From Tubulanus polymorphus (lineage: Eukaryota; Animalia; Nemertea), in assembly GCF_964204645.1 (NCBI RefSeq), contig NC_134033.1, positions 4,116,231 to 4,180,230 of the forward strand: a DNA stretch of 64,000 nt. Direction: 5' to 3'. The translations under genes and the position numbers were made by a program. Of the stretch, positions 3,348 through 64,000 are shown in pieces. The notes beneath the pieces were generated by a model that saw only the letters and a list, made by a program, of their open reading frames with translations, had not been told where the DNA came from and did not search any database. The number at the start of each line of letters is the position of its first letter. Position 1 is the first letter of the stretch.

Positions 3348-6300
3348 AGATTAGAAAACGCGTTTGGAACGATGTAAGACAAATTATTTCCCGAAATATC
3401 GAGAAAACGAAGATAAATGAAAGAGTTGAACGTCGACTCGTTAAATACGACTCGATTATTAGACAAAATCAAAACCCGAGTTGATTCTATAAAACGATCA
3501 GTGATATCTGATAAAAGAGCATTTTCACAATCGATGAAATGACCCCGGCAATTACAACGCTCAGGACACGTGACCTTACAGAATGACTCGTCATCCGAGT
3601 TATGTTTACAATTTACGACTCCGTCGCAAACTTCAGATTGCGGAATACATCGGTTTTCCTGGCCACATTTAAACATTCCCGGACACGACCAAGTCTCGCA
3701 GTTTCGTTCATCTTCTGAATTAGGACAATCGGATCGACCGTCACAAACGTGTCTGATCGGTATACAGTAAGATGCCGGACATTTTACAGTACCAGCCGCG
3801 CATTCGAAGTCATTACACGCGAGTATATGTTCAAGATTTCTACATACCGGGAAACCAATCGGCATCCTTTCTAAAATACACCTTTCGTGTCGGGAATAAC
3901 AGCGAAGAGAATTGAACGAACATCTTTGTTCATCCGATTCCTTACACAGATCTGTGAAACGAGTCGAACATTGATTGTCATCATTACAGTAAACCTCGGG
4001 ATTCACTGTCATATTAGTAACCAATTCGTCTTCTTCGAGACTTCCGCTACAATCCACGACACCATCCCGATACAACTGAAAACTAATACATTCACCGTCC
4101 GCGCACGAGAACCCCTGACAAAGTTCGGAAGTACATCCAACCTCATCGGAACCGTCTTTACAGTTGGCTAGTCCGTCACATCGTTTATAACTATCGATGC
4201 ATTGGTGATTGGAACAGCGATATTGCGTAGATAAACACGGTGGATGATAGCACGAGTTCTCATCCGAGCCATCGACGCAATCTCTCATAAAGTCACAGAA
4301 ACCGCTTATCGATATAACCTGTCCATCGTTACAGCGGAACTGACTGTGTAAATTGATATCCGTACAATCGAGTTCATCTTCACCGTGTTGACAGTCGTGT
4401 CTGGTATCACATACGCGATGGTCGCTGATACATCTTTGATCGTTACATTCAAACTGCCACGATTTACAACCGCTTATAGAAGCCAACTCTTCACCAGTTA
4501 CATTATAGGTACACAACACGGAATGTACTTTATCATTGAAGGCAGTCACTGACCATTTAACCGATTGAATATAAGTAATTTCATTTCTGGTCACCAGTGG
4601 TTTGATAACTTTAAATCCATCGAGGCCCATTGTCAGTATAGCGCCATATTGATGACGATATTGAAATTCGCTGACCAAGTTTTTCACGTCACTTTCTGTA
4701 TTTGAGGTGATTTTTACTATTTCGGCGCGGAAACTGTGACACATTTCTCTAGCACTCCGAATATTCAAACCTCGATTGTTTTTCCAGTCGGTTAGTATTT
4801 GAAAACATTGTCCCGAAATAGTTACCCAACCTCTTGGACAGGTTGAATTTATTAAAGTAATATCGGGAATCGTTTGATCTATTGTTTTATTTAAGTCTGT
4901 ATTTGATGAATTGTTCGCATCGTTTATCGTTGAATTGTGTTTGTTTTTGATGTCGATTCTCTCAGATTCACAAATGAATGTCGTGTGCGTCTCCTCGATT
5001 TGACACGGGAATCGAACCCAGTTCGCCGATCCTCGTGGATTATTCAGTATCATCGCCGTACACGGCATATTGACGTCATTTATCGGTTGTTTTCTTAGCG
5101 GAGATATCAATCCTCGAATAACTTCTGGTATCGTTTCATTAATAACAGGTTTATACCACTCTGTGTAGCTCAATGGTTTACCGTCAGTCCACGTGTAATA
5201 ACCATCATTCTGTTTCGCGAAGAAAATGAAATATATCACTTCTTTAAAAATCATTAGATTTTAATTTATATTAGAATGCATTAGTCTTACCTTCCATTTT
5301 AATCCAATCATCATTATGAGTGCTTTTAATGTATAAGCCATTCGGAGAAGTTCTGTAGCGAAAATTCTTTTGACGGAAATCATTTCCTGTTCTGAGTTGA
5401 TACTGAGTAGATGTCCCGCGTACTTCTGTCTACAGTATATTTCAGCGTTCTCCCAATTCAGACGTTCATCTCTGATGAATTTGATGCAGGAAATTCCGGA
5501 ATCCAGAAATCCTTGTTTACAGTAGAAATTATCGAAATGTTTAATCGGTAACGACTCGTGTAAAGTGTATTGTATTTGAAATGTCGGAATATAATTCTTT
5601 ACTTCAAAACGCAGAGTATTATCTCTTATACTATGAAATATAAGTCCACGAACCGCGTTATTTTCACATATTAAAGTTTCGTGTTGGGTACTAATAATTT
5701 TGATCAGTTTTCCATTTTGGAAGAGGTTGTACTGTATCCGCTGTATCAAGATTATTGGATCATTCTCACGTATGCTGTTTGTTTCGCATGAAACTGATCC
5801 AATAAATTTGACAATGAATCTGTAATATTGAAATATATTTTGTTCCATATGGTTTTCAAATTTATATGAAATAGATTCTGATGTAAGTCCTGCCCAACCC
5901 GGGTAGTTCGGTGACTGGACGAGTCCACATTTATCTTTAGTAGTAACTGGGAGATGGGATCCAAGAAATCCAGAACTATCAGATTTTTTCACTCCTAGAC
6001 ATTTACGACGTAGTTGAACTATTAGTGGATACTGCCAGAACCCAAACTCATTAACTGTGAAATCTACAGTGTTTAGTACGAGACTGTTATTAAGAAACTG
6101 ATTACTCAAACTCAGAAACTGATCACATGACCATGACATCTTGAAAAAACATTTATCATTTTGATATTCGTGTTCTGATAATATGTGAATATTTTTCAAG
6201 CGAAGGCGTCGATTTTCAGGTGTAATCACGAGACAGTGTGACGTCATATTGATCTGACGTTCTTCTTCCTGTAGAACATAACCATCACAATCAGTAGGAG

Positions 6301-32883: not shown

Positions 32884-35800
32884 TTATTTACTGGATGTCG
32901 TCGATCCTAGTCGTCGTTTATTGCGTTCACGAATAGATTTCATATCGATTGTAAGTATTGTATAAAGAAGCGGATTCAGAGACGAGTTGATCGGTAAAAA
33001 TAGAACGGCCAGCCAAGCGGCCACCTGGTTCGGTATCTCGACCGAAAATACGGCGCAAAACTGAACGATTATTATCGGTAGCCAGCAAAATAGATTACAA
33101 AGATTGATTACTAAACTCCTTCGCGCTAAAACAAGTTCGGTAGGATCGGCTCTACCCGAGCCCGACCTACTTCCAGATACGAGTCTATACATCTGAGCGT
33201 ACGTCGTCATTATCGTAGCCAATATGGCCGCATTAAACAAGGCAAAAATAGCGAATGAATAGTGCCAGCCATTGACGTCGATCGTCAGTAAATTCATAGG
33301 CAAACAAACTCCGGTTGTACCGTAAAAATTGTCTCCGAAGTAAGACGACGATGACAGCGGTAGAATAGAAACTGTGCTCATAACGAGCCAACAAATGCAG
33401 CAAATCCCGATAACGTATTTAGGAGTTATAATCGGACTTCTAGAAAACGGGTTGACGATATTTGAATATCTCTGACGCGTTAGAATTAAGAGAAAAGTCA
33501 GGGAACCTTCGCACGAAACGGTGACAATAACCCCTGAGAGACGGCATAATGAGCTATCCGTCCAGGTTTCAGAATTCAGATAATAAACGCCTTTGAACGC
33601 GTGGTCAGCTCCTGCGATCAAAAACAAATAGACCGACATCAGAAAATCACAACCGGCAATATTTATGATGAGGATATCTGAAGATGTGTTACGTGTTCCG
33701 GTGGATTCCATCCGCAAAGCTTGAACTCGAAATGCAATAACGATACTGTTAGCGAGAAAACTGAAAGTTGCGATCATCCAGATGATGGCTCTCAGTACAG
33801 CGTTACCCATCAGGTCAGAGCAGGTCGAAAATTGATCAGCTTCGGGAAGACATCGGTCAACATTCGGTGCCATGCAGCAAAATTTGTAAGCATCCGAAGC
33901 GAGGTATTTCAATGATGTAAGATCGCCAAGGACGTTTCTTTGTACGGATATTACTTCAAAATTGTTGACGAGGTCTAAAATTTCAAGTTGAACCAATCCA
34001 GAAAAAGCATAGCTAGAAATATAATGTATTCTGTTACTGCTGATATTTAACGACTGTAATGCGGATAAACCTTTAAATACATTTTCACCGAGAACCGATA
34101 TAGAAAGTCCGTGAAGATCGAGAACAGTAAGTGACGTCAGACCTCGGAAACTACCGTCTTCTAAATGTTGCAGCGGATTTCCGATAAGAAATAGTTGTTT
34201 TAAACCGATCAAACCTGCGAATGTATTAGCAGATAATGATGTTATGCGGTTGTGAGTAAGGTCTAATGTGTATAGATTGTTTAGATTAGAAAACGCGTTT
34301 GGAACGATGTAAGACAAATTATTGCCCGAAATATCGAGAAAACGAAGATAAATGAAAGAGTTGAACGTCGACTCGTTAAATACGACTCGGTTATTCGACA
34401 AAATCAAAACCCGAGTTGATTCTATAAAACGACCAGTAATATCTGATAAAAGAGCATTTTCACAATCGATGAAATGACCCCGGCAATTACAACGTTCAGG
34501 ACACGTGACCTTACAGTATGACTCGTCATCTGAGTTATGTTTACAATTAACGACACCGTCGCAAACTTCAGATTGCGGAATACATCGATTCTCCCTGCCA
34601 CATTTAAACATTCCCGGACACGACCAAGTCTCGCAGTTTCGTTCATCTTCTGAATTAGGACAATCGGATCGACCGTCACAAACGTGTCTGATCGGTATAC
34701 AGTAAGATGCCGGACATTTTACAGTACCAGCCGCGCATTCGAAGTCATTACACGCGAGTATATGTTCAAGATTTCTACATACCGGGAAACCAATCGGCAT
34801 CCTTTCTAAAATACACCTTTCGTGTCGGGAATAACAGCGAGGAGAATTGAACGAACATCTTTGTTCATCCGATTCCTTACACAGATCTGTGAAACGAGTC
34901 GTACAGTGATTGCCATTATTACAGTAAACATCGGGATTCAATGTCATATTAGTGACCAATTCGTCTTCTTCGAGACTTCCGCTACAATCCACGACACCAT
35001 CCCGATACAACTGAGAACTAATACATTCACCGTCCCCGCACGAGAAACCCTGACAAAGTTCGGCAGTGCATCCGATCTCATCGGAACCGTCTTTACAGTT
35101 GGCTAGTCCGTCACATCGTTTATAACTATCGATACATTGGTGATTGGAACAGCGATATCGCGTAGATAAACACGGTGGATGATAGCACGAGTTCTCATCT
35201 GATCCATCGACGCAATCTCTCATAAAGTCGCAGAAACCGCTAATCGATATAACCTGTCCATCGTTACAGCGGAACTGACTGTGTAAATTGATATCCGTAC
35301 AATTGAGTTCATCTTCACCGTGTTGACAGTCGTGTATGGTATCACATACACGATGGTCGCTGATACATCTTTGATCGTTACATTCAAACTGCCACGATTT
35401 ACAACCGCTTATAGAAGCCAACTCTTCACCAGTTACATTATAGGTACATAACACGGAATGCGCTTTATCTTTTGTATCATCGAAAGGTTTTAATATCCAT
35501 TTAACCGATTGAATATACGTAATTTCATTTCTGGTCACCAGTGGTTTGATAACTTTAAATCCGTCGCGGTCCATTGTCAGTATAGCGCCATATTGATGTC
35601 GATATTGAAATTCGCTGACCAAATTGTTCATATCGCTTTCAGTATTTGAAGTGAGTCTTACTATTTCGGCGCGGATGCTGTGACACATTTTTCTAGCACT
35701 CCGAATATTCAAACCTCGATTGTTTTTCCAGTCGGTTTGTATTTGATAACATTGTCCGAAAATAGTTACCCAACCTCTTGGACAGGTTGAATTAATCAAA

Positions 35801-38800
35801 GTAATATCGGGAATCATTTGATCTATGGTTTTATTTAGTTCTGTATTTGTTGAATTGTTCGCGTCGTTTATCGTTGAATTGTGTTTGTTTTTGATGTCGA
35901 TTCTCTCGGATTCACAAATGAATGTCGTGTGCGTCTCCTCGATTTGACACGGGAATCGAACCCAGTTCGCCGATCCTCGTGGATTATTCAGTATCATCGC
36001 CGTACACGGCATATTCACGTCATTTATCGGTTGTTTTCTTAGCGGAGATATCAATCCTCGAATAACTTCTGGTATCGTTTCATTAATAACAGGTTTATAC
36101 CACTCTGTGTAGCTCAATGGTTTACCGTCAGTCCACGTGTAATAACCATCATTCTGTTTCGTGAAGAAAATGAAATATATCACTTCTTTATAAATCTTTC
36201 TATTTTAATTAATATTTGAATACATTAGTCTTACCTTCCATTTTAATCCAATCAACATTATGAGCGCTTTTAATGTGTACGCCATTCGGAGAAGTTTTGT
36301 AGCGAATAATCTTTTGATTGAAATCATTTCCTGTTCTGAGTTGATACTGAGTAGATGTCCCGCGTACCTCTGTCTACAGTATATTTCAGCGTTTTCCCAA
36401 TTCAGACGTTCATCTCTGATGAATTTGATGCAAGAAATTCCGGAATCCTGAAATCCTTGTTTACAGTAGAAATCATCGAAATGTTTAATCGGTAACGACT
36501 CGTGTAAAGTGTATTGTATTTGAAATGTCGGAATTCTATTGTTTACTTCAAAACGTAAAGTATTATCTGATATACTATAAAATATAAGTCCACGAACCGC
36601 GTTATTTTCACATATTAAAGTTTCATGTTGAGTTTCAATGGTTTTGAAATATTTCCCATTAAGAAAGGGTTCGTAATTGATTGATTGTATGAAAATGATC
36701 GGATCTTTTCGACCGAATCTGTCTGTTTCACATGATACTGATCCAATAAATTTCACAATAAATCTGTAATATTGAAATATATTTTGTTGTATCGGGTTTT
36801 CAAATCTATATGAAATCGACTTTGATGTACTTCCTGCCGAACCCGGGTAGTTCGGTGACTGCACTAGTCCACATTTATCTTTAGTAGTAACTGGAAGAAA
36901 TGAGCTGTCAAATCCAAAACTAACCGCTTTTTTCACTCCTAGACATTTACGACGTAGTTTAAATATTAGTGGATACTGCCAGAATCCAAACCCATCGACT
37001 GTGAAATCTACAGTGTTTAATACGAGACTGTTATTAAGAAACTGATTACTCAAACTCAGAAACTGATCACATCGCCAAGACATCTTGAGAAAACATTTAT
37101 TAATTTAATATTCGTGTTCTGATAATATGTGAATATTTTTCGAGCGAAGGCGTCGATTTTCAGGTGTAATCACGAGACAGTGTGACGTCATATTGATCTG
37201 ACGTTCTTCATCCTGTAGAACGTAACCGTCACAATCAGTAGGAGCAAATCGAAGAGATGATCTGAAAGGATCACCATCTGTTAACTGATTGTTATAGTAA
37301 TAAGCGTATGCTACTACAGTAACCGGTCCACCTGATGTAATCAGGCTGACGACAGATCGACCGTAGTATGAACCAGGACAATACGGACCATAGCGTCTAG
37401 CTGTGAAATTACTACCATCAAATATATAAAAACCAGCTCGATCACAGTTTTCTGATAGCACTGTTAGTTTCAACAGTTCTTCGTAGATGTTCACTTTCCA
37501 GTTTAGTTGTAATGTAGTTACACGATACAATGTATTCTTTGATCTCGGGATCAATTGATTAGCTGTTAAACCATTCGCGCCCACATCATTCTGAAATATA
37601 AGAGAATCGATTACAACATTGAACGTTTACAATACGACAATTCTAAACTCCTTACGACTTAGAATTAGATAAATATATCAATAACAGTTCAAGATGTTCC
37701 AAACTTAACCCAAATTCTCAACACCCATCATAATTAGTGTCTGCGCAAACAACATGTGTTTTGGGTCACATTGCGTTATTATTCCAAGTTTCTCGGTATA
37801 GTTTCACTGGTCAAAATCGCCATCAAAATATATGTAATTACAATGATTTTATTACACGATCCAAACTTACAAATCATTATAATACACTTACCGATATCCT
37901 TGGTTTGTTGACGTAGACGTCTGATATTGTCATTGATTTCGCTTTAAATTCTATTTTCAAATTCGATCTTGAGAAATCCGATGTCGTTAAAACGCACAGA
38001 GTCACGAGAAATCCGTCTGATTTTACACTCAGGGAATTAAGATGGTTAAAACTGAGTAAAATATCAGTTCTCACAATACGTAACCCTTCCTGTTTATATA
38101 CACCAACGACACCTGGTGACGAGACGAGATCACGTGTCCAGTTGAAGACGACGTACTGCAGAACATCGACTGTGATAGACCAGCAGTATAAGTGTTTAGA
38201 CTGAGTTACTATATGTGGTATTCCATCAATTGTAGTGAGCAGTCCTGATTTATTGTAGACTTGAATTAACGGGTTAGAGATGTTCCAATCTGATATTTGG
38301 TAAACTTGCACGAGTAACTGTGACTTAAACGACAGTTTATTTGAAATGAATTCAATACGTGCTTTATTAGTTTTAGTATAAAACGATGAAGGCGGATGTC
38401 CGGTTTGTTCTCGTATAAGAGCTATAGGTTCACTGGTGCTGTTCCATCCGTCGTAAATTTGAGGACGAGTTTTAATCGGATCCTCACCTGGTCTTAATCT
38501 GAAATCTATCTCTATAAACGTTAAATTCATTGCAAACCTGTCTGGCATCTCGATCCATTCAAACAACAATTTACATCGCCGAGTAGAAATTGTGAATTTA
38601 TAACCTGTTTGAGTTGGTAATTCGTTTACTGCACGTTTTGAGCATTTATGTACAATTTTCAAACGACTCTGTTCTTCAAAACGATATATAATATAAACCC
38701 GACTACCTCGCGCTCCATCGACGTTACTCTTAAAAAACAACGAAATCAAATCGTTACTGCGGATATCTTGTTGTTTTTTTCCGGTAGCGCAGAGTTTGTA

Positions 38801-53194: not shown

Positions 53195-55080
53195 AGTAAA
53201 AAAGTCTATTTCTGTCATGAATTCGCCGGTGGGCCGGAGCGCCGTCCTGTGCCCACCGAGCTTACCTCCTCGGTCTCCTGAGAAAACTATACGACAAGTG
53301 TAAATTAAGCGAAGTAACTCACACATTTATAACATTATTACAATACGAAGCCGTTCCGTGAAATAGTCAAACCCGAACTTCATACCACTCGTCATAACCG
53401 GATTAATCGTCCTTGACCGATCAGAGATTACATTCATAATTCCAGGCAAGCAGACGATCGAAACTAATTTGAATCAATGATTTAGGACAAAATTGCGATC
53501 TATATTTAATAATAGCGACCACCTTCCCAAGCCTATAGCTCGACTACTCTCAGGTGCTGTATAAATGTCTCGGACGATTGAACCGGTTACAAGTTGAATT
53601 TACAAGTAATATTTCATTGTCCAGTTTTATGGAATAAGTTTCTTTTATCTGATAAATGGTTTTACATAGGACTCCTCTTAACTCAAATTTGTCAAAACCG
53701 GCAAGTGGAATTATCATTTCAAACTTTAATACAGATTTAGAACCATTACAACAAAAGAATAATCAAGAATATCAATCAGGTTTTTCTAACACCTCAAACA
53801 TTTAACACTGGTCAGAAATTAATTCGAGTTAAGAGGAATGTTAGGAGTCTAATGTATCTGAAATTGCTGTAACGAGGACCAATCTGTTTGATAGATAGGC
53901 TTAAACCCGACCTAACCTAAGTTTCCTATACGAAAAACTGTTAGAAATTCTACTCACCAATTCATGGATTACTTCGATCAGTCTTCTGTTTGTTACTTAG
54001 AAGATATGACATCCAAACATGCTACAGCACCGAGCTCTGTTGGTCCAGGTTGGTAAAGTCCAGCACGCAGACAGCAATCGGGTCTGGAGTAATCGAGGAA
54101 TGTCTGTATTCCAAATATGCATTTGTTGATTTAGTCCGCAGCAGGTATTGACAGCAAACAGGTCCCGAGTAAGAGAAGAAGGCCTGAAGTCCACTGTGTA
54201 TTTGTTGATTAAGTCCAGCACGCAATGACAGCAATCAGAGGAAGTAGAGCTTCTCTGAAAAAAACGTAATGATCACCGTTATGATTTTTAATTTGACTCC
54301 ATACAATCCGTTATATCCAGTATTAAAAAACCTACAAATCTACTCACCACCAATTCAATTCTGTGTGGAGAATCATAGATTATTTTGAAAACAGCGTTGG
54401 TTTAGTCAGCCCCGCGGTATTGGAAGCAATGAGGTCCTCAATGAGGAATGGCTGATCTGAAAAAGAAAACAATTTCATATTTTACAGGTTTCAATTCTGA
54501 CTGATGAATCAATATTCAAATAAAGAAGCCCGAGCCCTTTTAGCTTATAGATTTACAAAATCCCGTTTAAGATTCAACTCACCTAACCTCACGTAAGGAC
54601 TGGACATATATGCGCGTGTATAGTGAATTCAACGTATGTTACGAATGAATCATCAGAATTGGTTCAATTCAAATCCAACACGTATTACATGATTTTAAAA
54701 ACCGAGGACAATAACAGGACGCAATATGAACTGAGTTTGTCATAATGCGGTTCAATGGACACGAGAACCACTGGCTACAAAATACCACTGAACTACAAAC
54801 GCGTGGTTCTATGATAATACGTACCACACCCTCTGTACTATTCTAACAAACTCAAAAATATTCATTTCAAATACAATGAATAAGAAGTGGACCAGTGGGT
54901 ATCAATAATTCATTAGCTGGATTCATTAGCATCGGTCAAATATAAGAAGTGGACCAGTCCTCATTAGAATGCACAAGAAATATCTTAGAACATTTCGCAC
55001 TACATTTCAAAAAATCAAATATCCATTGTGTATGAATTGTCGCTGAATTCGAAGAAAAATCTTAGAACTATTAGCGATAG
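53195..55080 (-). ncRNA. Family X copy 2 (most complete)
   Basis: Matches 19620-19700, 22340-23480 and 47764-48675 in reverse complement. Several splice-like signals are at equivalent positions. Confidence 0.45.
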
Positions 55081-55094
55081 ACTGTTAACTAATG

Positions 55095-55915
55095 CCAGAT
55101 CTAGCTCATTCCCAGACCTAGCTCATTATCAGACCTAGCTCATTCTCAGAACTAGATCATTCCCGCCAGACCTAGCTCATTCCCAGACCTAGCTCATTCC
55201 CAGACCTAGCTCATTCCCAGACCTAGCTCATTATCAGACCTAGCTCATTCTCAGAACTAGATCATTCCCAGACCTAGCTCATTCCCAGACCTAGCTCATT
55301 CCCAGGCCTAGCTCATTCCCAGACCTAGCTCATTCCCAGACCTAGCTCATTCCCACCACACCTAGCTCATTATCAGACCTAGCTCATTATCAGACCTAGC
55401 TCATTATCAGACCTAGCTCATTCCCGCCAGACCTGGCTCATTATCAGACCTAGCTCATTCCCGACGGACCTAACTCATTCCCAGACCTAGCTCATTCCCG
55501 CCAGACCTAGCTCATTATCAGACCTAGCTCATTCCCGCCAGACCTAGCTCATTATCAGACCAAGCTCATTCCTAGACCTAGTTCATTCTCAGACCTAGCT
55601 CATTCTCAGACCTAGCTCATTCCCGCCAGACCTAGCTCATTATCAGACCTAGTTCATTCTCAGACCTAGCTCATTCTGAGACCTAGCTCATTCCCGCCAG
55701 ACCTAGCTCATTATCAGACCTAGTTCATTCTCAGACCTAGCTCATTCTGAGACCTAGCTCATTCCCGACGGACCTAGCTCATTATCGGACCTAGCTCATT
55801 CCCGTCAGACCTAGCTCATTATCGGACCTAGCTCATTCCCGCCAGACCTAGCTCATTATCAGACCTAGTTCATTCTCAGACCTAGCTCATTCTTAGACCT
55901 AGCTCATCCCGCCAG
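55095..55915. repeat. 17/20-bp minisatellite (ccagacctagctcattc), roughly 45 units
   Basis: Directly visible, with variant units -attat, -attct and -attcccg. Confidence 0.97.
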
Positions 55916-56514
55916 CCCACGAATTGTCATCGCGGGACAAAACGAAAAAATTCCGTTTTATCGCGAAAATGAACCCACAACATTTCGGTTTTTACTGACA
56001 GCCATCATCAGGAATCTGTTAGAAATAAAGAGATGTTGCGCACGTAATGTCGCGCTAGAGAGTCGCCATATACGTAAACAAAAAAAAAGAAGATAACCAC
56101 AGTATTTACGAACGTTCTTAGTTAAGTTCGACTCCCAGAGTAAAGATCAGTATTTCGATACATGGATTGTCAATGTTCGAACTCAGTATGCTCGCGTTCC
56201 CAGCGGTACATGCAGTTCTCAATGTTCTCTGGCGGTTCTCAATGAAAGTTCTGTTCTGATTGGTGTAATAGGCCAAAAACACCGGGGTGCCTTTTGCTCA
56301 AAAGTTGATTACATTTAACCAATGGATAGTCAGGCGTCCCGAGGAATTTTCATAGGGGGTTCAAATTAGCATCGATCCAGCATCCGAGCACAATGTCTGG
56401 TGTTTAGTGGACATCCCCCTCAGTTTACTGGCCCCGGAATGTTCTCTCTCCTCTCCGATGACGAACTAATGAGAAATACACGTCTTGTCTTTCGTAAATT
56501 TGTATTTATTGATA

Positions 56515-57966
56515 TCAGTCAGTATCGGGAGTCCTTTGAATGCAAACTGCTGGCTGCTGAACACCGAAATCTTGGTAATCCAAATCTACAAAAAAAAAAT
56601 CAATTGAAAATCAACATACCGGTACGTGAACTGAACAGAGCAAGGCGCATCTTTGAACGATGGGCGTAGGTCGACCTTGCGATGCGACGCGATCGTCGCG
56701 TTGCGTCACAAGTGGCTGCACAAGTCGGTTGCGACGCGATTGTCAGCGACCGTGTGCGACTAGTTGCTCTCCAGTCGCAAGAGCGCGTTGATCGGTTGCG
56801 ATGGTCGCGTCGCGTCGCAGAAAGTAGAACATGTGCGACTGACTCATTGCGACTGGCGTTGCTGGCAGTCGCAACCCGTCGTTGGCAGTCGCAAGGTAGC
56901 GTAGGTCGGTTGGTCGCTGGCGGTTGCAGTAAGTCGCGTCGCAGTGAGTCGCAAGCCGTCGCAAGGCCGACCTACGCCCGGCTTTAGATAGCTGGGCGTA
57001 GGTCGGTCGTATTTGGCGGCGTAGTAATTAAGAATGGTATTTCCATCGAAATTGTGTTAAATCGGGTGGTAGATTTCTGACGGATCCCTGTAAGATCCGC
57101 CAACACTCACTCCAGCCGGTAGTACGGCCGATGACGTCGTAATTGAAGATGGACTTGACCTTGACCTCGATGACGCCGTCTGCGGGTACGTTCTTCATGA
57201 TGAAGAACGCGCCGTATTTGGCGCGTTCGGTCGTTCGCCACGCCTCTTCTCCCGGCCATCGGTAATTCACTTCGTAAATGGCATTTCTAAAGATAAAAAG
57301 AAAACTGACTTGAAAATTTATTGACGTCTTGAAGAATAACCCACATATTGCTCGATATTGTCGACAACGAATGATATACTATGAATGATATATTATCAAG
57401 GATCAAAAAAGTTATTTCTAATTTGAATATATCGACAATATTGAACGCCAACCAGTCCAGCCCCAATATCAATGACGTAGTACACACATCCACTCCCACA
57501 ATATCCCGATTACCATTAAAATTCGCTATCATAAAGTTCATCTTAGTTCTATAACCAATGCAATAACTTAAGGCTAGTCTCAAGATTTAGGAACACTTGT
57601 ACTCAAGGTACGATGCGCAACTGATCCCGGAACGCCCCAAAACTTTTGTTGTAAAAATCTTCTTTCTTTGAATATGCTTCTACGTAAAAAATAAAACGCA
57701 CAGTTATATGAAGAAAAGTCTATTTTCTAACTGCTTCGGATTACTCCTAAAACTCCATCATCAAAGAAACTAAAAACAAAAATGCTTCTACGTGCATCCC
57801 TCGGAAGAACTATTTCCATACCTGTAATTGTGAAATGTTAATTGCGTCCAGAATTTGTTTTTTTCGGTGAATCGGTACTGTATGTTACCGCGAACAGGAC
57901 ACGGCACCATTTTCCACGAATTCGGGATCCAGCCCGACGGAAGCTGCATCGCGATATCGAAACCAC
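56515..57966 (-). CDS. Expansin-like protein (EXLX/YoaJ type), last three coding exons 57966-57822, 57286-57111, 56585-56515
   Basis: Phase-compatible GT-AG splicing gives GFDIAMQLPSGWIPNSWKMVPCPVRGNIQYRFTEKNKFWTQLTFHNYR|NAIYEVNYRWPGEEAWRTTERAKYGAFFIMKNVPADGVIEVKVKSIFNYDVIGRTTGW|NLDYQDFGVQQPAVCIQRTPDTD*. AATAAA at 56510-56505. Fits the end of a DPBB domain plus CBM63. The acceptor could alternatively be at 57997. Confidence 0.82.
56662..56985. mobile_element. GC-rich palindromic MITE in the last expansin intron
   Basis: TIRs gggcgtaggtcgaccttgcga / tcgcaaggccgacctacgccc with tgcgac/gtcgca subrepeats. An extra TIR stub lies at 56991-57006. Confidence 0.8.
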
Positions 57967-58563
57967 CTTCAACAAAAACGAAATAAACATCATCGATCTA
58001 TAAAACCAGGGACGTCTCATTACATTTCCCTGATAAAACCAACGAGGGATTTCTGGTTAATTTTATGGGCCCAAGAGACCGGTTCCGTAGTCAGGACTTC
58101 AGACCAAAAGTGGTCATAACCCTTTGGTGCCCAACCGTTTTTCCCTCAAAAGGTCTTTTGTGCCCAAGGTATATGGCCGATGCAATTAAACAACGAGCTA
58201 GGATACTACTAAAATCATCATAACTTTTTAAATTATGAAGATAGACAGATAATCTTTACACCAAATGAAAGGTAACTTTCACAGCTATCAGATAATGCAG
58301 AATAACATATTCCATATATATGATTACCCCAAAAATAATGACAAATCACACCTCATAAAAATTTTTAAACTTCATGAAGAAAATACAATATTTTTTGGCA
58401 AAAGTATATCTAAATGTCAAATAAAGAAACAAATCACACAAAATGGTATATTTCCTAAGTTATATCCAAAAATCAAGCCATTTCCTCAATAAAGAAAAGG
58501 GTTAAACCTTAACACTGGTCTTAAATTATTAGATTGGCTATAGAATTAAGTTTGTCTTGGAAC

Positions 58564-61500
58564 TGTTGTGGAGTTGCTTTCGGTTCTCCAACAATGTTGC
58601 GGGGTTGAATTTCTCAACCAATTGTTGTGGGGGCCACGTTGCGTTCTCCCCTCGTGTTGTCGTTGTTGGTTCCGATTAATCCGATAAGTGATATCCCTCT
58701 GACTCCAGAATAATAACAACTCATCTCGTGGGTCTACGTTCTTTCTTTATTTTCCCGCACAATTCTTATTCCTTCCTACAGCTCGTATTTTTAGGCTTCT
58801 TCGCCACTCTCGCATCTCTCTTCCCCTTACTGTGCTGACCCTCCCTTTTAATCTTATTTCATGTTACTCGTGACGTATACTTCTACATATGTTATACGTC
58901 ACGAGTTTATTACTTGTTTACTTCCTAGCCATACCAGAGCTCAAGGCTGCCGCTATAACCAGCAACCCTGCGCAGATACTCACGTCACTTTCACCTATCT
59001 TCTATTCAGTGTCTTGTGTGCGACGTAAGCATCTACGTAGGTTGTTTACTAACTTCAGCCACTGCCCTGAACTCTGGCTTCCCTCCCTCTATGCAAACTA
59101 CTAATTTATCACCCCAATACTATCCTCCTCCCCAGACGATTGGTCCCCAATCGCCAAAAATTCACAAGACCCTATTGTAGTTTCCCAAAAAAAAAAAAAT
59201 CTTTTCAAAAGTGCACAGGCTTCAGAACATCATTTATAAGCAACATCTCTTACAACTTAAAGCCAGCCGCAGGGTAATGAAAATTACACAAAACCTTCAG
59301 AACATCAAGACTAATGATACACAACCACCATTCCGTACATCAATTTACAACACCTGTAAAGTAGACATAAATCACAATTTCTGACCCTTTCCCCTATTAT
59401 CCAATCCTACATCAAACTTCCACCTAAACTAAGCAACACACCCCACTCATCATCAGTTCATCTTATTCATCAACGAGACCTACATGGACCTCATAGAATT
59501 TTAAGATAAGCCAAAAAAATTTCTAAATACTTATAAACTTAACACACGAACTTTATCTAAGGGAAAGCAATCATCTACAAATATCAAATATGAGACTCTT
59601 TTCATCAGTAATATATAACAATTATGAGGCATGTACATCTGTATATTGATCTTACATTTAATGAGAACAAGCCTATACAATTGTAGTCATGCAAAAAAAA
59701 CATATCAAACACAACTTCCCAAATAGCTTTCATAGACAATCACCCATTTCTCTATATCCACATTTATGTAGTCTAATAATTTAACAATATATGACCAACC
59801 ACTTCAACTTTCTGACTCTTCTCGTTCTCGTTATCTTTACCAAAAAAAATAATCAGTGTGTGCAGCCTAATTTGTCTTTAAAATTACCATTGCAAACACG
59901 TCAATTTCCCACTGTCCAAACTATCAGCCGTTACCTTAACCGATATCAGATGATTTGTCAAACCTGTCCCGACCCCAATCAACGACGTAAATTAATACAG
60001 ATGCCAGATACATCATTTAGTTGATTATTATGTGCCCAGCACACGTTGGCAACAGACATGCTCAACAATGAATTCACAAACAATTTCATAATAATTTTTC
60101 TATGTGTACGTAACATAAAGGTAAGCCAAAACATACCAAAAATGAATATACCGCATGCGTACATTCGCATTATTGAGATGTCAGCTGCTAGTCCCCACCC
60201 ATTGCCTCAGAAAGCACATTTATCCGTAGTCTAGGCAGGGATAACATGAACTGCTATTTGCGGCTTGGAACCGTTGAAATAGACAGGCAGGCCGCCATAT
60301 ATTTATGGAAGGATGTCATAAAGTGACCACAAAACTCATTAAGATGCATCACCCAAAAGTTAGGGAAAATTCCTCTGGACACTACTCATTCAGTGCCATT
60401 CAAACAGCCGATTCTCAAAAATTAACTTTAACTCCTGGGCCTATGGTCTTCCAAACCACCCACATCTGATATTCGAATTGTTCTAATTCCTTCCCGCAAA
60501 TCAGGGGATATAACCCCACATGTAAAACGGCCGACGCATCATCCTGTATATAAACCGGTCAGGACGGACTGAAAGTTCGGAAAAAAACATAGCGCTCACA
60601 CATCCTTGCAATCAACGACCATTCAGTTAAGATACCCAATCTACCGAATAATACTTATCATACTTATTGTATTACGCAATGAGCAAACCTTTACTTCTAA
60701 AAACCCAATCCCCTGAATGGCCATTTCAGCATACCTAACAAATAGCTGTATCGTGACATTTCTCATTTCCGTATCATCCCCGATGTCACGCCTTACCGGA
60801 GTAAATAAAATCTATGGATAAATAGGGAACCGGCCGACGAATCACCCATTTGGTATTTCTTGATATTCGACCCTAATTATGCCCAACATATATATCCAAT
60901 CTCTCCCAGAGGCTAGCCACTAAACATTATACTGTTTCAAAGGATCTTCAGAATTCATCCTTCGGGCTCTAATCCCCCGTATTATTCCGGACCACCCCCA
61001 GAGCATCCCTTACTCTTCATCCAGGTCCCTGGTCCACCTTAATTCATCTCATATAAGCAACTCTATTCAAACCCCCTCCGGTAAGATTCACCACTGAGCG
61101 CCCAATCTAACCTTTGCACAATAAACATATTCTATACTAACTCGCGATACTCATTATATTTCTTAAAACCACATAAACACCACAGTTATTTGTTAGGTAT
61201 ATACAGGCAGTGAGCGCTTTCAACTATCGTTACACTGATAACCGAGTGGCTTACCTAGACTATTAAATCATTCTTTCGCGAAATACCATCCAGCAAATTT
61301 AGCAAACTATAAAAGATTTACGTAGTGCATATTTATATCTACGTAGATACAATAACCCAGCACACAAGCAACTTAAAAACGCTGAGTATCATTCTACAAA
61401 AGCAATCAAAACATGCAGAAATACATATCATATTATTTACAATTACTATAAGCCGCAATCGTAGTCCGTTGAACGTCTCCAAGGTCGATTTCCCGTAGCA

Positions 61501-62617
61501 GATCTATGAACTGTCCGATGATGAAATGCGTTTGTATAATGCCTCTAATACTCTACTGTTTTTCATTTATCGCGTTACGATCGCAGAATCGCTTCGTTTC
61601 CGAACGCCATTATGTCCGTTAATTCACACGAATCTAAATTCGGAGTCGTAAATTCAATTTGCTGCTATGTAAAACGTAGTGTCCAAAACACGATCTTACG
61701 AAAACGCCACACCAAATCGGATAATTCAATTAATTTAAATATGGAAAGAAACAACTACTTTCCGCACTGGAAGCTCTATAATTCATTTCAACTGAATCTG
61801 ACGATATGAAGATTACATATTTCTCGAATAAGACAAACAAACAGCTATTAAATCCAGACGGGAATGATTTTTATACACAGATCGAGTTATCCGCAATATT
61901 TCCACTTAACCCGCGGTAGCGGCCCGTATTTCATATAATTATAACGGTTACGGAATGTAACGTTCATCTTACACTTTTACTTCACCCCTGCTCACTCACC
62001 AAATATACACGATCGCTTGGCAGCGAGAGGTGCAGGATACACCACTGTTCTCCACCAATGTTGTGGGGTTGCTTTCGGTTCTCCAACAATGTTGTGGAGT
62101 TGAGTTTCTCAACCAATTGTTGTGGGGGCCACGTTGCGTTCTCCCCTCGTGTTGTCGTTGTTGGTTCCGATTAATCCGATAAGTGATATCCCTCTGACTC
62201 CGGAATAATAACAACTCTTCTCGTGGGTCTACGTTCTTTCTTTATTTTCCCGCTCAATTCTTATTCCTTCCTACAGCTCGTATTTTTAGGCTTCTCCGCC
62301 ACTCTAGCATCTCTCTCCCCCTTACTGTGCTGACCCTCCCTTTTTATCTTATTTCATGTTATTCGTGACGTATACTTCTACATATGTTATACCGTCACGA
62401 GTTAATTATACTTGTTTACTTCCTAGCCATACCAGAGCTCAAGGCTGCCGCTATAACCAGCAACCCTACGCAGATAGTCACGTCACTTTCACCTATCTTC
62501 TATTCAGTGTCTTGTGTGCGACGTAAGCATCTACGTAGGTTGTTTACTAACTTCAGCCACTGCCCTGAACTCTGGCTTCCCTCCCTCTATGCAAACTACT
62601 AATTTATCACCCCAATA
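58564..62617 (-). mobile_element. Non-autonomous LTR retroelement (LARD/TRIM-like)
   Basis: Near-identical ~556-bp LTRs at 58564-59119 and 62059-62617. PBS TGGTGGAGAA (tRNA-Ala-like) at 62057-62048. PPT GGGGAGGAGGATAG next to the 3' LTR. Flanks GGAAC/GAAAC form an imperfect TSD. No internal ORF over 80 aa. Confidence 0.88.
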
Positions 62618-62971
62618 GAAACACATTCAGAAACACTATCTAATTTGTTGGGTTGTTCGGATGAATTCTTCAAATCATGGATAATATATCAATTCGATGA
62701 TAAAATGAATATAGATAATTATGGTGAATACTTTCATATTGATCACGTGTTGCCGATTTCTAAATTTGATATGAGTGATGATTATAATAAGAAGCTAATC
62801 TGGAACTGGAGAAATTTAAGGCCTTTAGAAAAGAAGGAAAACATTATTAAATCCAATAAACTAGATTTACAGTTATATTTAGATCAACTGGATAAAGCAA
62901 AGACATTTGTTGAATTATGGAATAGTATTTCACAGAATCAACCGCATTCTGAGGTTTTGATCAGTGGTTAG
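62618..62971 (+). CDS. HNH / endonuclease VII-like ORF of the large-DNA-virus/Polinton type, 5'-truncated at the LTR
   Basis: LLGC..FFKSWI.YQF...M...NYGEYFHIDHVLPISKF...NWRNLRPL.K.EN..K. Confidence 0.72.
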   Translation, partial: ETHSETLSNLLGCSDEFFKSWIIYQFDDKMNIDNYGEYFHIDHVLPISKFDMSDDYNKKLIWNWRNLRPLEKKENIIKSNKLDLQLYLDQLDKAKTFVELWNSISQNQPHSEVLISG

Positions 62972-63319
62972 AAAGCTGGCAATTCTATTTGAGCTTTGTA
63001 TGTATATAATACATAGCTTTTGCTTACTACTAAAACATATGTTGCCAAATATATCTTGTTTTCAATTCTAAAGAATTAATTAACTTCATCATAAAGAACA
63101 TCTGTGCAGAAGTAATTAGTTTGGTCGAACGTGCGCCACGTTAGCAGTTAGAAATCAACTTTCACATACATGGTACGTATTGGATATTCTCTCTCAAAAC
63201 ACAGTTTACAGTTCTAAATCTAAATGTAAGTACCGTTTTTTGTAGTTATTATGAAGTAGGGAAACCTTTAAACATATTTAAGTATAGTAATTCATTTTCA
63301 CGATATCTTTTAGATTAAA

Positions 63320-64000
63320 ATGGAACACAAAGATCAACCAGAAATTCTAAGCCAACCAACGGATGAGGAACGATTGCTACTGGATAGTGAAACTCAGGAA
63401 TCAATAGAAATGGAGGATGAAACTCTCATAATTGACGAACAAACTTCACAAAAATTACAAGAACATTTGGACTATCATCAAGAAATGGTGAAAATTCTGA
63501 GTGATGTAATACATAATAAACAATTACCGCGCGAACTACAATTACCAAAATTACCAGCAACGCGACTTAAATTGCTGTTGGGACTCAAAGAATCGAAAAC
63601 TAAGAAAATGAGTGGAGAAGAGTTGAACGAGTTTTTAAAATCTAAATTAATCATTGACACAGGACATTTAAACTTTCCGGAAATACAAAGTGTAGAAGTT
63701 ATTTCATTTGCTGAAATTACTGATATCTTAAAAAAAAGTTATAAAACCATATTAAATAGAAAAGCAAATCACCTATGGGACCACATCATTTTCGGGGGTT
63801 ATCTAAATATAGGGTTTTCAATGTTTGATAAAGAAACTGAGGGGATTTCTTGGGGACTGTGGGTTAAAAAGAACATAGATATCAGTGCTGGTTTTGAAAG
63901 AAAACTGAGAAGAGTAGGTAGATTAATGAAATATGAAAAATTCAAAATATTAGGATTAGCATTTAGTGAAGTAGTAAGACATTTACCAGAAATTGAAGAA
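63320..64000 (+). CDS. Intronless ORF of at least 227 aa (open to the right edge), virus/Polinton-accessory-like, unknown function
   Basis: Hand translation MEHKDQPEILSQPTDEERLLL...FGGYLNIGF...SWGLWVKKNIDISAGFERKLRRVGRLMKYEKFKILGLAFSEV. Missing from the ORF track because it has no stop. Confidence 0.65.
   Translation, partial: MEHKDQPEILSQPTDEERLLLDSETQESIEMEDETLIIDEQTSQKLQEHLDYHQEMVKILSDVIHNKQLPRELQLPKLPATRLKLLLGLKESKTKKMSGEELNEFLKSKLIIDTGHLNFPEIQSVEVISFAEITDILKKSYKTILNRKANHLWDHIIFGGYLNIGFSMFDKETEGISWGLWVKKNIDISAGFERKLRRVGRLMKYEKFKILGLAFSEVVRHLPEIEE

Follow-up and report, generated by a model that had tools for sequence, protein, structure and literature searches.

The locus described here is genuine, but it lacks the 5' part of the ribbon-worm gene for a microbial-type expansin of which it is a copy. 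It lies in a stretch of 64,000 nucleotides (the window) from the genome of Tubulanus polymorphus, a palaeonemertean, and the gene from which it was copied, hereafter the parent gene, was found elsewhere on the same contig. We consider it likely that the window locus is a truncated duplicate, that the parent gene encodes a secreted, two-headed expansin, and that the family goes back to an early animal ancestor.

Exons and expansin homology of the window locus

The locus consists of three exons on the minus strand. Exon A (57822..57966) corresponds to parent exon 8, with which it is 100% identical. It encodes the last strands of domain 1 with the putative Asp82 equivalent (GFD) and then the beginning of domain 2, where an F/W pair takes the place of W125/W126. 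The first in-frame Met of exon A is at 57949. Exon B (57111..57286, minus strand; parent exon 9, 96.6% identical) encodes the body of the CBM63-like domain 2 including the Tyr157 equivalent, and exon C (56515..56585, minus strand; parent exon 10) the C-terminal tail and a TGA stop, 4 nt past which an AATAAA polyadenylation signal is located (56505..56510, minus strand). The initial annotation had described three minus-strand exons with matching phases, a stop and AATAAA. This was borne out by the GT-AG borders of both introns, the split codons AG|A (Arg) and A|AT (Asn), the TGA and the signal at 56510-56505. True spliceosomal introns and an animal nuclear gene, as it had proposed, are supported as well. 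The RefSeq model XP_074658214.1 (LOC141911141; 124 aa, here P0007) contains the private residues and both junctions of the window copy. Its coding start in RefSeq is an internal Met; its 9-residue hydropathy peak is 0.44, and no signal peptide was found in this model.

Exon A alone matched the solved structures of EXLX1 from Xanthomonas (9ms4, E 3.7e-4) and Bacillus (2bh0, E 0.015), and P0007 matched the same structures with E values of 3.9e-6 and 2.6e-5, respectively. P0007 was also homologous to the NCBIfam profile NF041144 (expansin_EXLX1) with E 5.6e-10. The match covers positions 85-170 of the 194 in the profile, a span formed by domain 2 and the last part of domain 1; its score of 38.8 bits is below the curated cut-off of 100 bits. 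Searches in Pfam with single exons and RefSeq models as queries yielded no expansin match. In alignments to 2bh0, the F/W pair and a Tyr of the window domain 2 fell on W125/W126 and Y157 as had been predicted, and the aromatic binding strip is thus present. The equivalent of Asp82 was mapped by motif spacing across a deletion of ~7 residues, and the structural model was poor (pLDDT 51). Judged from these matches, the EXLX1-type homology claimed for the window exons is beyond chance. The window locus comprises exons 8-10 only and does not encode a complete DPBB domain 1 and a CBM63 domain 2 in one polypeptide.

Truncation and genomic surroundings

Exons A and B occurred nine times in the genome, eight times on contig 9 (2.77-4.17 Mb) and once on a 139-kb contig. 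The blocks around the nine copies were 93-97% alike, and the copies have insertions of their own. When the domain-1 exons were used as genome-wide queries, the sole match was the parent gene (C9:2,772,348-2,778,033), 1.4 Mb from the window copy and on the opposite strand. The expectation that the 5' exons of the window copy would be found beyond 64 kb was not confirmed, as no upstream expansin exon was detected in 26 kb searched, including 20 kb past the window end.

Directly upstream of exon A we found a remnant of parent intron 7 (57967..58566, minus strand) in two pieces, 58566-58502 and 58124-57967, separated by an insertion of ~380 bp. Homology to the parent stops at 58566, which marks the truncation breakpoint. 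This breakpoint is adjoined by an LTR-like element (58564..62617) with direct repeats of ~555 bp (58564-59119 and 62059-62617; 96-99% alike) and an interior of ~2.9 kb without a long ORF; one repeat of this element is left in the copies c2912, c3093 and c22. Homology to the sister copies ends at an AT-rich stretch (62618..64000) that contains no expansin exons and is probably the end of a Polinton/Maverick-type element reaching past the window. Taken together, the end of homology at 58566, the pair of LTR-like repeats and the Polinton without an expansin exon indicate that the missing 5' exons do not lie further upstream. The duplicate probably arose by a break in intron 7 at the LTR-like insertion, after which segmental duplication probably spread exons 8-10 and downstream DNA to eight other places. 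Lacking a signal peptide and nearly all of domain 1, the window copy would encode at most a 124-aa domain-2 binding module starting from an internal Met. Almost all of domain 1, which is needed for loosening (PMC5072189), is missing, and the wall-loosening activity proposed for this locus is not expected.

The intron between exons B and C contains a MITE-like repeat of ~325 bp with terminal inverted repeats (56662..56987), which has many copies genome-wide and is also present in parent intron 9. Several other features were observed in and around the window. The Polinton/Maverick-type element past the window end (L013/L014, C9:4.180-4.197 Mb) encodes integrase-chromodomain, A32 ATPase and type-B polymerase ORFs, and an HNH-like ORF at window positions 62645-62971 had no Pfam match. 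A G-skewed tandem repeat array whose length differs between copies is located downstream of the expansin exons (54000-56000), and a short tandem repeat array near the window start (1660-2127). At positions 3245-39127 (minus strand), a large GRL101-like receptor is represented by four units in tandem, which are nearly free of introns and have CUB-like and C-type-lectin-like ORFs, LDLa repeats, LRR and 7TM; one ORF has 1099 aa (32884-36183), and the others are split into shorter ones.

Anatomy of the parent gene

The parent gene is encoded on the plus strand of a 16.5-Mb contig and consists of 10 exons for a protein of 622 aa. All nine introns are GT-AG with matching phases, and the 622 codons are free of internal stops. 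Comparisons were made exon by exon rather than with a joined 622-aa model, and junction codons were translated for phase only. Exon 1 encodes a hydrophobic leader (hydropathy peak 3.1), exons 2-5 module 1, exon 6 a linker and exons 7-10 module 2. The linker comprises 191 aa of repeats rich in Pro (63), Thr (54), Glu (34) and His (15). In both modules domain 1 is followed by domain 2 in the canonical order and in one reading frame, behind the putative signal peptide of exon 1. The two modules are 33-64% identical exon by exon; two intron positions are exactly common to them, and the phase-1 introns after domain 2 are one codon apart. The common intron positions point to an internal duplication that took place after intron gain. 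By motif spacing relative to EXLX1, Asp71 is kept in both modules, and at position 82 there is an Asn in module 1 and an Asp in module 2. After this position the two modules are, again by motif spacing, ~7 residues shorter than EXLX1. Module 1 is basic (net charge +11) and module 2 nearly neutral (+2), with aromatic strips of W/W/Y and F/W/Y, respectively.

The 5' flank of the parent gene contains an animal TSFM gene (mitochondrial EF-Ts) identical to XP_074658122.1 and, next to it, a GPCR-like ORF. The EF-Ts gene is intronless and arranged head-to-head with the parent gene at a distance of ~1.9 kb; the adjoining GPCR-like ORF is likewise intronless, and the two occupy L011:55-1230 and 3499-4470 (C9:2.766-2.770 Mb).

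In EXLX1 domain 2 binds and loosening requires domain 1 with Asp82, and the exchange D82N abolishes creep (PMC5072189). While the exon structure, the homology, the truncation, three spliced junctions and the common intron positions were observed directly, we infer secretion, binding, loosening, substrate and age. The parent most likely encodes a two-headed expansin that is secreted and acts without hydrolysis. The aromatic strip of either domain 2 would attach to flat surfaces of beta-1,4 glycans. Module 2, which by this mapping keeps the equivalents of Asp71 and Asp82, would be the loosening head. Because of its Asn at position 82 and its basic charge, module 1 is probably an anchor, and the Pro/Thr/Glu/His repeat linker would space the two modules.

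Transcription and splicing

In the RNA-like run X4, contigs were found that skip introns 6, 8 and 9 at GT..AG, with depths of 17.9, 76.4 and 10.1, respectively. Intron 6 exists in the parent only and the exon 9-10 contig has the parent base at L031:7526, so that the parent gene yields a spliced transcript. A join of exons 7 and 8 was not observed in X4, since no contig covered the 3' end of exon 7. The contig spliced from exon 8 to exon 9 carries alleles of the truncated copy at C9:3.038 Mb and starts with 28 letters that were not placed on exon 7. None of the listed RNA contigs had the haplotype of the window copy, for which the junctions 57822/57286 and 57111/56585 had been suggested as a check. 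In runs X2 and X3 there were no joints at GT-AG; both resemble DNA or unspliced RNA and were therefore left out of the expression and copy-number evidence. Run X5 had no contigs placed on the gene.

Constraint among the truncated copies

The eight truncated copies contained no stops, and their variants were 10 synonymous and 10 non-synonymous, corresponding to a pN/pS of 0.27-0.35 (p 0.004-0.02 depending on transition bias). Non-synonymous changes occurred at roughly half the rate of changes in non-coding sequence (p 0.017), and the exons were free of indels where 4.2 were expected (p 0.015); all of these tests are weakened by shared history and gene conversion among the copies, and the exons being richer in GC than the introns may lower the indel rate. 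Coding constraint of the eight copies as a group is not predicted by a pure passenger model, and some of the truncated copies are probably under constraint. The private changes of the window copy (two non-synonymous, one synonymous; alleles L031:6845A, 6895T and 7515G in the parent frame) are uninformative on the constraint of this copy alone, which is more likely a passenger as it has neither leader nor domain 1.

The copy at 3.038 Mb is represented by the RefSeq model XP_074658306.1 (LOC141911224; 158 aa, here P0009), which has a hydrophobic N-terminus of 29 aa encoded by two small exons 43 kb upstream of expansin exon 8. Five copies of these signal-like exons were observed within the same duplicated region, at G000:C9:2994582-2995200 and at 2.844, 3.152, 3.823 and 3.984 Mb. 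None of the five is located upstream of the window copy. The P0009 model and the 28 unplaced letters of the spliced contig fit a chimeric, secreted, domain-2-only product, with the caveat that the RNA sample (S2) may come from a different individual. For the copy at 3.117 Mb (LOC141911226, P0008), the RefSeq model continues into intron 9 instead of splicing it out and has another C-terminal tail of 26 aa, which is either an alternative or a mis-predicted 3' end.

These results raise the question of whether the 3'-only copies, the window copy included, make up a recently formed, functional family of glycan-binding proteins that consist of domain 2 (CBM63-like) alone. At least one member (C9:3.038 Mb) would have acquired its signal peptide through splicing to two exons from a duplicated gene nearby, and the window copy would be driven from its LTR-like repeat and start at the internal Met. 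The low pN/pS and the intact exons of the eight copies, the P0009 N-terminus and the exon 8-9 contig at a depth of 76 speak for such a family, and there is a precedent in the grass group 2 allergens, which derive from a truncated beta-expansin (PMC6264518). Against it stand the lack of signal-peptide exons upstream of the window copy, its absence from the listed RNA contigs and its two non-synonymous versus one synonymous private changes, as well as the non-independence of the copies, the GC content of their exons and the uncertain identity of the RNA donor. On balance we regard a working family that includes the window copy as unlikely, and a truncated duplicate as the better description of this locus.

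Relatives and origin of the family

An exhaustive search of exon 7 against 1.84 billion proteins gave three matches, none of which was a bacterial expansin. One was P0003, a transcript-like eukaryotic protein of 279 aa (run SRR28369062) that is 31-52% identical to the Tubulanus exons, matches EXLX1 with E 3.2e-7 and is classified as an expansin by language-model features. It scored 52.4 bits against NF041144, and since this is a full-length homologue, the low score suggests a divergent subfamily. Another was an exon (P0002/P0005) on contigs of 0.5-1 Mb from another animal. The third, P0001 with cytochrome c repeats, was rejected as a chance match of CxxC. P0003 was modelled twice with AlphaFold, both times at low confidence (pLDDT 43 and 51), and the models were kept out of the residue mapping; Foldseek still ranked expansins first. 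Word-based homologue searches returned only P0003 and the Tubulanus models, and as this method is limited by length and shared words, their otherwise blank outcome says little. A bacterial genome scan with P0007 gave no match, and a plasmid search only weak matches to Clostridium EXLX1.

The exon P0002/P0005 belongs to a spliced EXLX gene on a 559-kb animal contig (L040/L051; NF041144 E 4.8e-8 and 6.6e-11), which lies next to a rhodopsin-family GPCR (7tm_1) and has an in-phase chitin-binding CBM14 exon downstream. The two internal introns of this gene agree in codon and phase with introns 3/7 and 4/8 of Tubulanus; it is likewise shortened in the loop after position 82 and has Asn at 82. We take this animal to be probably an anthozoan, since the layout of expansin and chitin-binding domain matches that of Exaiptasia Expansin-YoaJ, which has a chitin-binding domain and is upregulated in the pedal disc (PMC6626399). 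At L051:9960-20423 the expansin is followed by a CBM14 exon running into a low-complexity ORF of ~980 aa and, further on, by a second CBM14 ORF; these are possibly parts of one large chitin-targeted protein. In the ESM Atlas, a cluster dominated by Hemichordata was a structural match. A giant-virus (Nucleocytoviricota) cluster of 279 aa lay near expansins by features (0.84-0.88) and is a lead only, and domain-2-sized clusters were also seen in Ascomycota and Actinomycetota.

Based on these comparisons we favour an old animal expansin family that was present in an early animal ancestor and retained patchily over a recent transfer, because two intron positions are common to Tubulanus and L040. 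The horizontal acquisition suggested by the initial annotation would require a recent transfer from a bacterium to a nemertean, later intronization and a role in loosening cellulose from algae or plants in the diet. Among solved structures and profiles, the best matches are indeed bacterial EXLX1, and expansins are rare in animals, with annotations in bivalves and Oikopleura (bioRxiv 10.1101/637728). Yet the closest relatives found are spliced or transcript-like eukaryotic sequences, the shortened loop after position 82 is shared with L040 along with the introns, a hemichordate-dominated cluster matches structurally, and expansins have been annotated in an anemone (PMC6626399) and in the sponge Spongilla (yoaJ; PMC10176882). 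Dietary plant use also fits poorly with nemerteans being predators and scavengers (PMC6410017), and we consider this scenario very improbable. Even less credit can be given to contamination or to the nine copies being an assembly artefact. Chase et al. cautioned that animal expansin annotations might be contamination (bioRxiv 10.1101/637728), and one of the nine copies is on a short 139-kb contig, but this explanation is largely refuted by the nine spliceosomal introns, the animal neighbours on a 16.5-Mb contig, the spliced X4 contigs, and the copies being 93-97% alike with insertions of their own.

The diet of nemerteans (PMC6410017) makes chitin or matrix glycans at least as likely a substrate of the parent expansin as dietary algae, and the introns shared with an expansin-CBM14 gene make chitin as plausible a target as algal walls. 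A dietary algal or plant substrate, as originally suggested, thus appears doubtful for an animal that feeds as a predator or scavenger and has anthozoan-type homologues fused to CBM14. From sequence and feeding habit, chitin or similar matrix or prey glycans would be the likeliest substrate, at about an even chance, and microbial or algal walls would come second and be clearly less probable.

Comparison with known expansins

Like EXLX1/YoaJ (2bh0, 9ms4, Clavibacter 4jcw; NF041144), the Tubulanus parent has a DPBB followed by a CBM63-like domain, an aromatic strip and a putative Asp71 equivalent. It shares a D-x-C-x-x-C motif with Clavibacter 4jcw, and module 2 has a putative equivalent of Asp82. 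It differs from these proteins by its tandem modules, mucin-like linker, apparent Asn82 in module 1, ~7-residue-shorter loop and nine introns, and the window copy differs by retaining domain 2 but just the last part of domain 1. Other animal-encoded expansin-like genes with the EXLX domain order are those of Exaiptasia (PMC6626399), Spongilla (PMC10176882), bivalves and Oikopleura (bioRxiv 10.1101/637728) and L040/L051. Unlike the Exaiptasia gene and L051, which combine one module with CBM14, the Tubulanus parent has two modules and no CBM14. Expansin-like proteins of plant-parasitic nematodes are also animal-encoded and have a DPBB domain, but their domain order is reversed, whereas it is canonical in both parent modules. 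The grass group 2/3 pollen allergens (Phl p 2, Phl p 3) are domain-2-only proteins from a truncated expansin gene (PMC6264518) and as such analogous to the truncated Tubulanus copies. The latter arose in an independent event from an EXLX-type parent in the same genome instead of a plant beta-expansin, and the window copy lacks a signal peptide. As anticipated, "expansin-like" labels exist for several animals and we found no functional study in the papers searched; neither did these papers contain a domain-2-only or tandem animal expansin.

Implications

The main survey of non-plant expansins left the animal annotations unconfirmed, as either real genes or contamination (bioRxiv 10.1101/637728). 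For Tubulanus polymorphus this question is settled by the nine introns of the parent gene, its animal neighbours, the spliced transcripts and the shared introns, and the same evidence suggests an old animal family. With its apparent natural Asn/Asp pair at position 82, the parent protein would allow anchoring and loosening roles to be tested directly against each other. The window locus alone, being a partial duplicate, is the least informative of the nine-copy set; the 3'-only copies, with their coding constraint, may document the birth of a new gene. More tentatively, and with less confidence than in the reading given at the beginning, an intron-bearing EXLX expansin acting on chitin or matrix glycans might have been kept in animals since before the split of cnidarians and bilaterians, with this nemertean possessing a two-headed anchor-plus-loosener and a newly arisen, selected domain-2-only family, one member of which would be secretable via exon capture. 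If true, this domain-2-only family would be the counterpart in an animal of the grass group 2 allergens.
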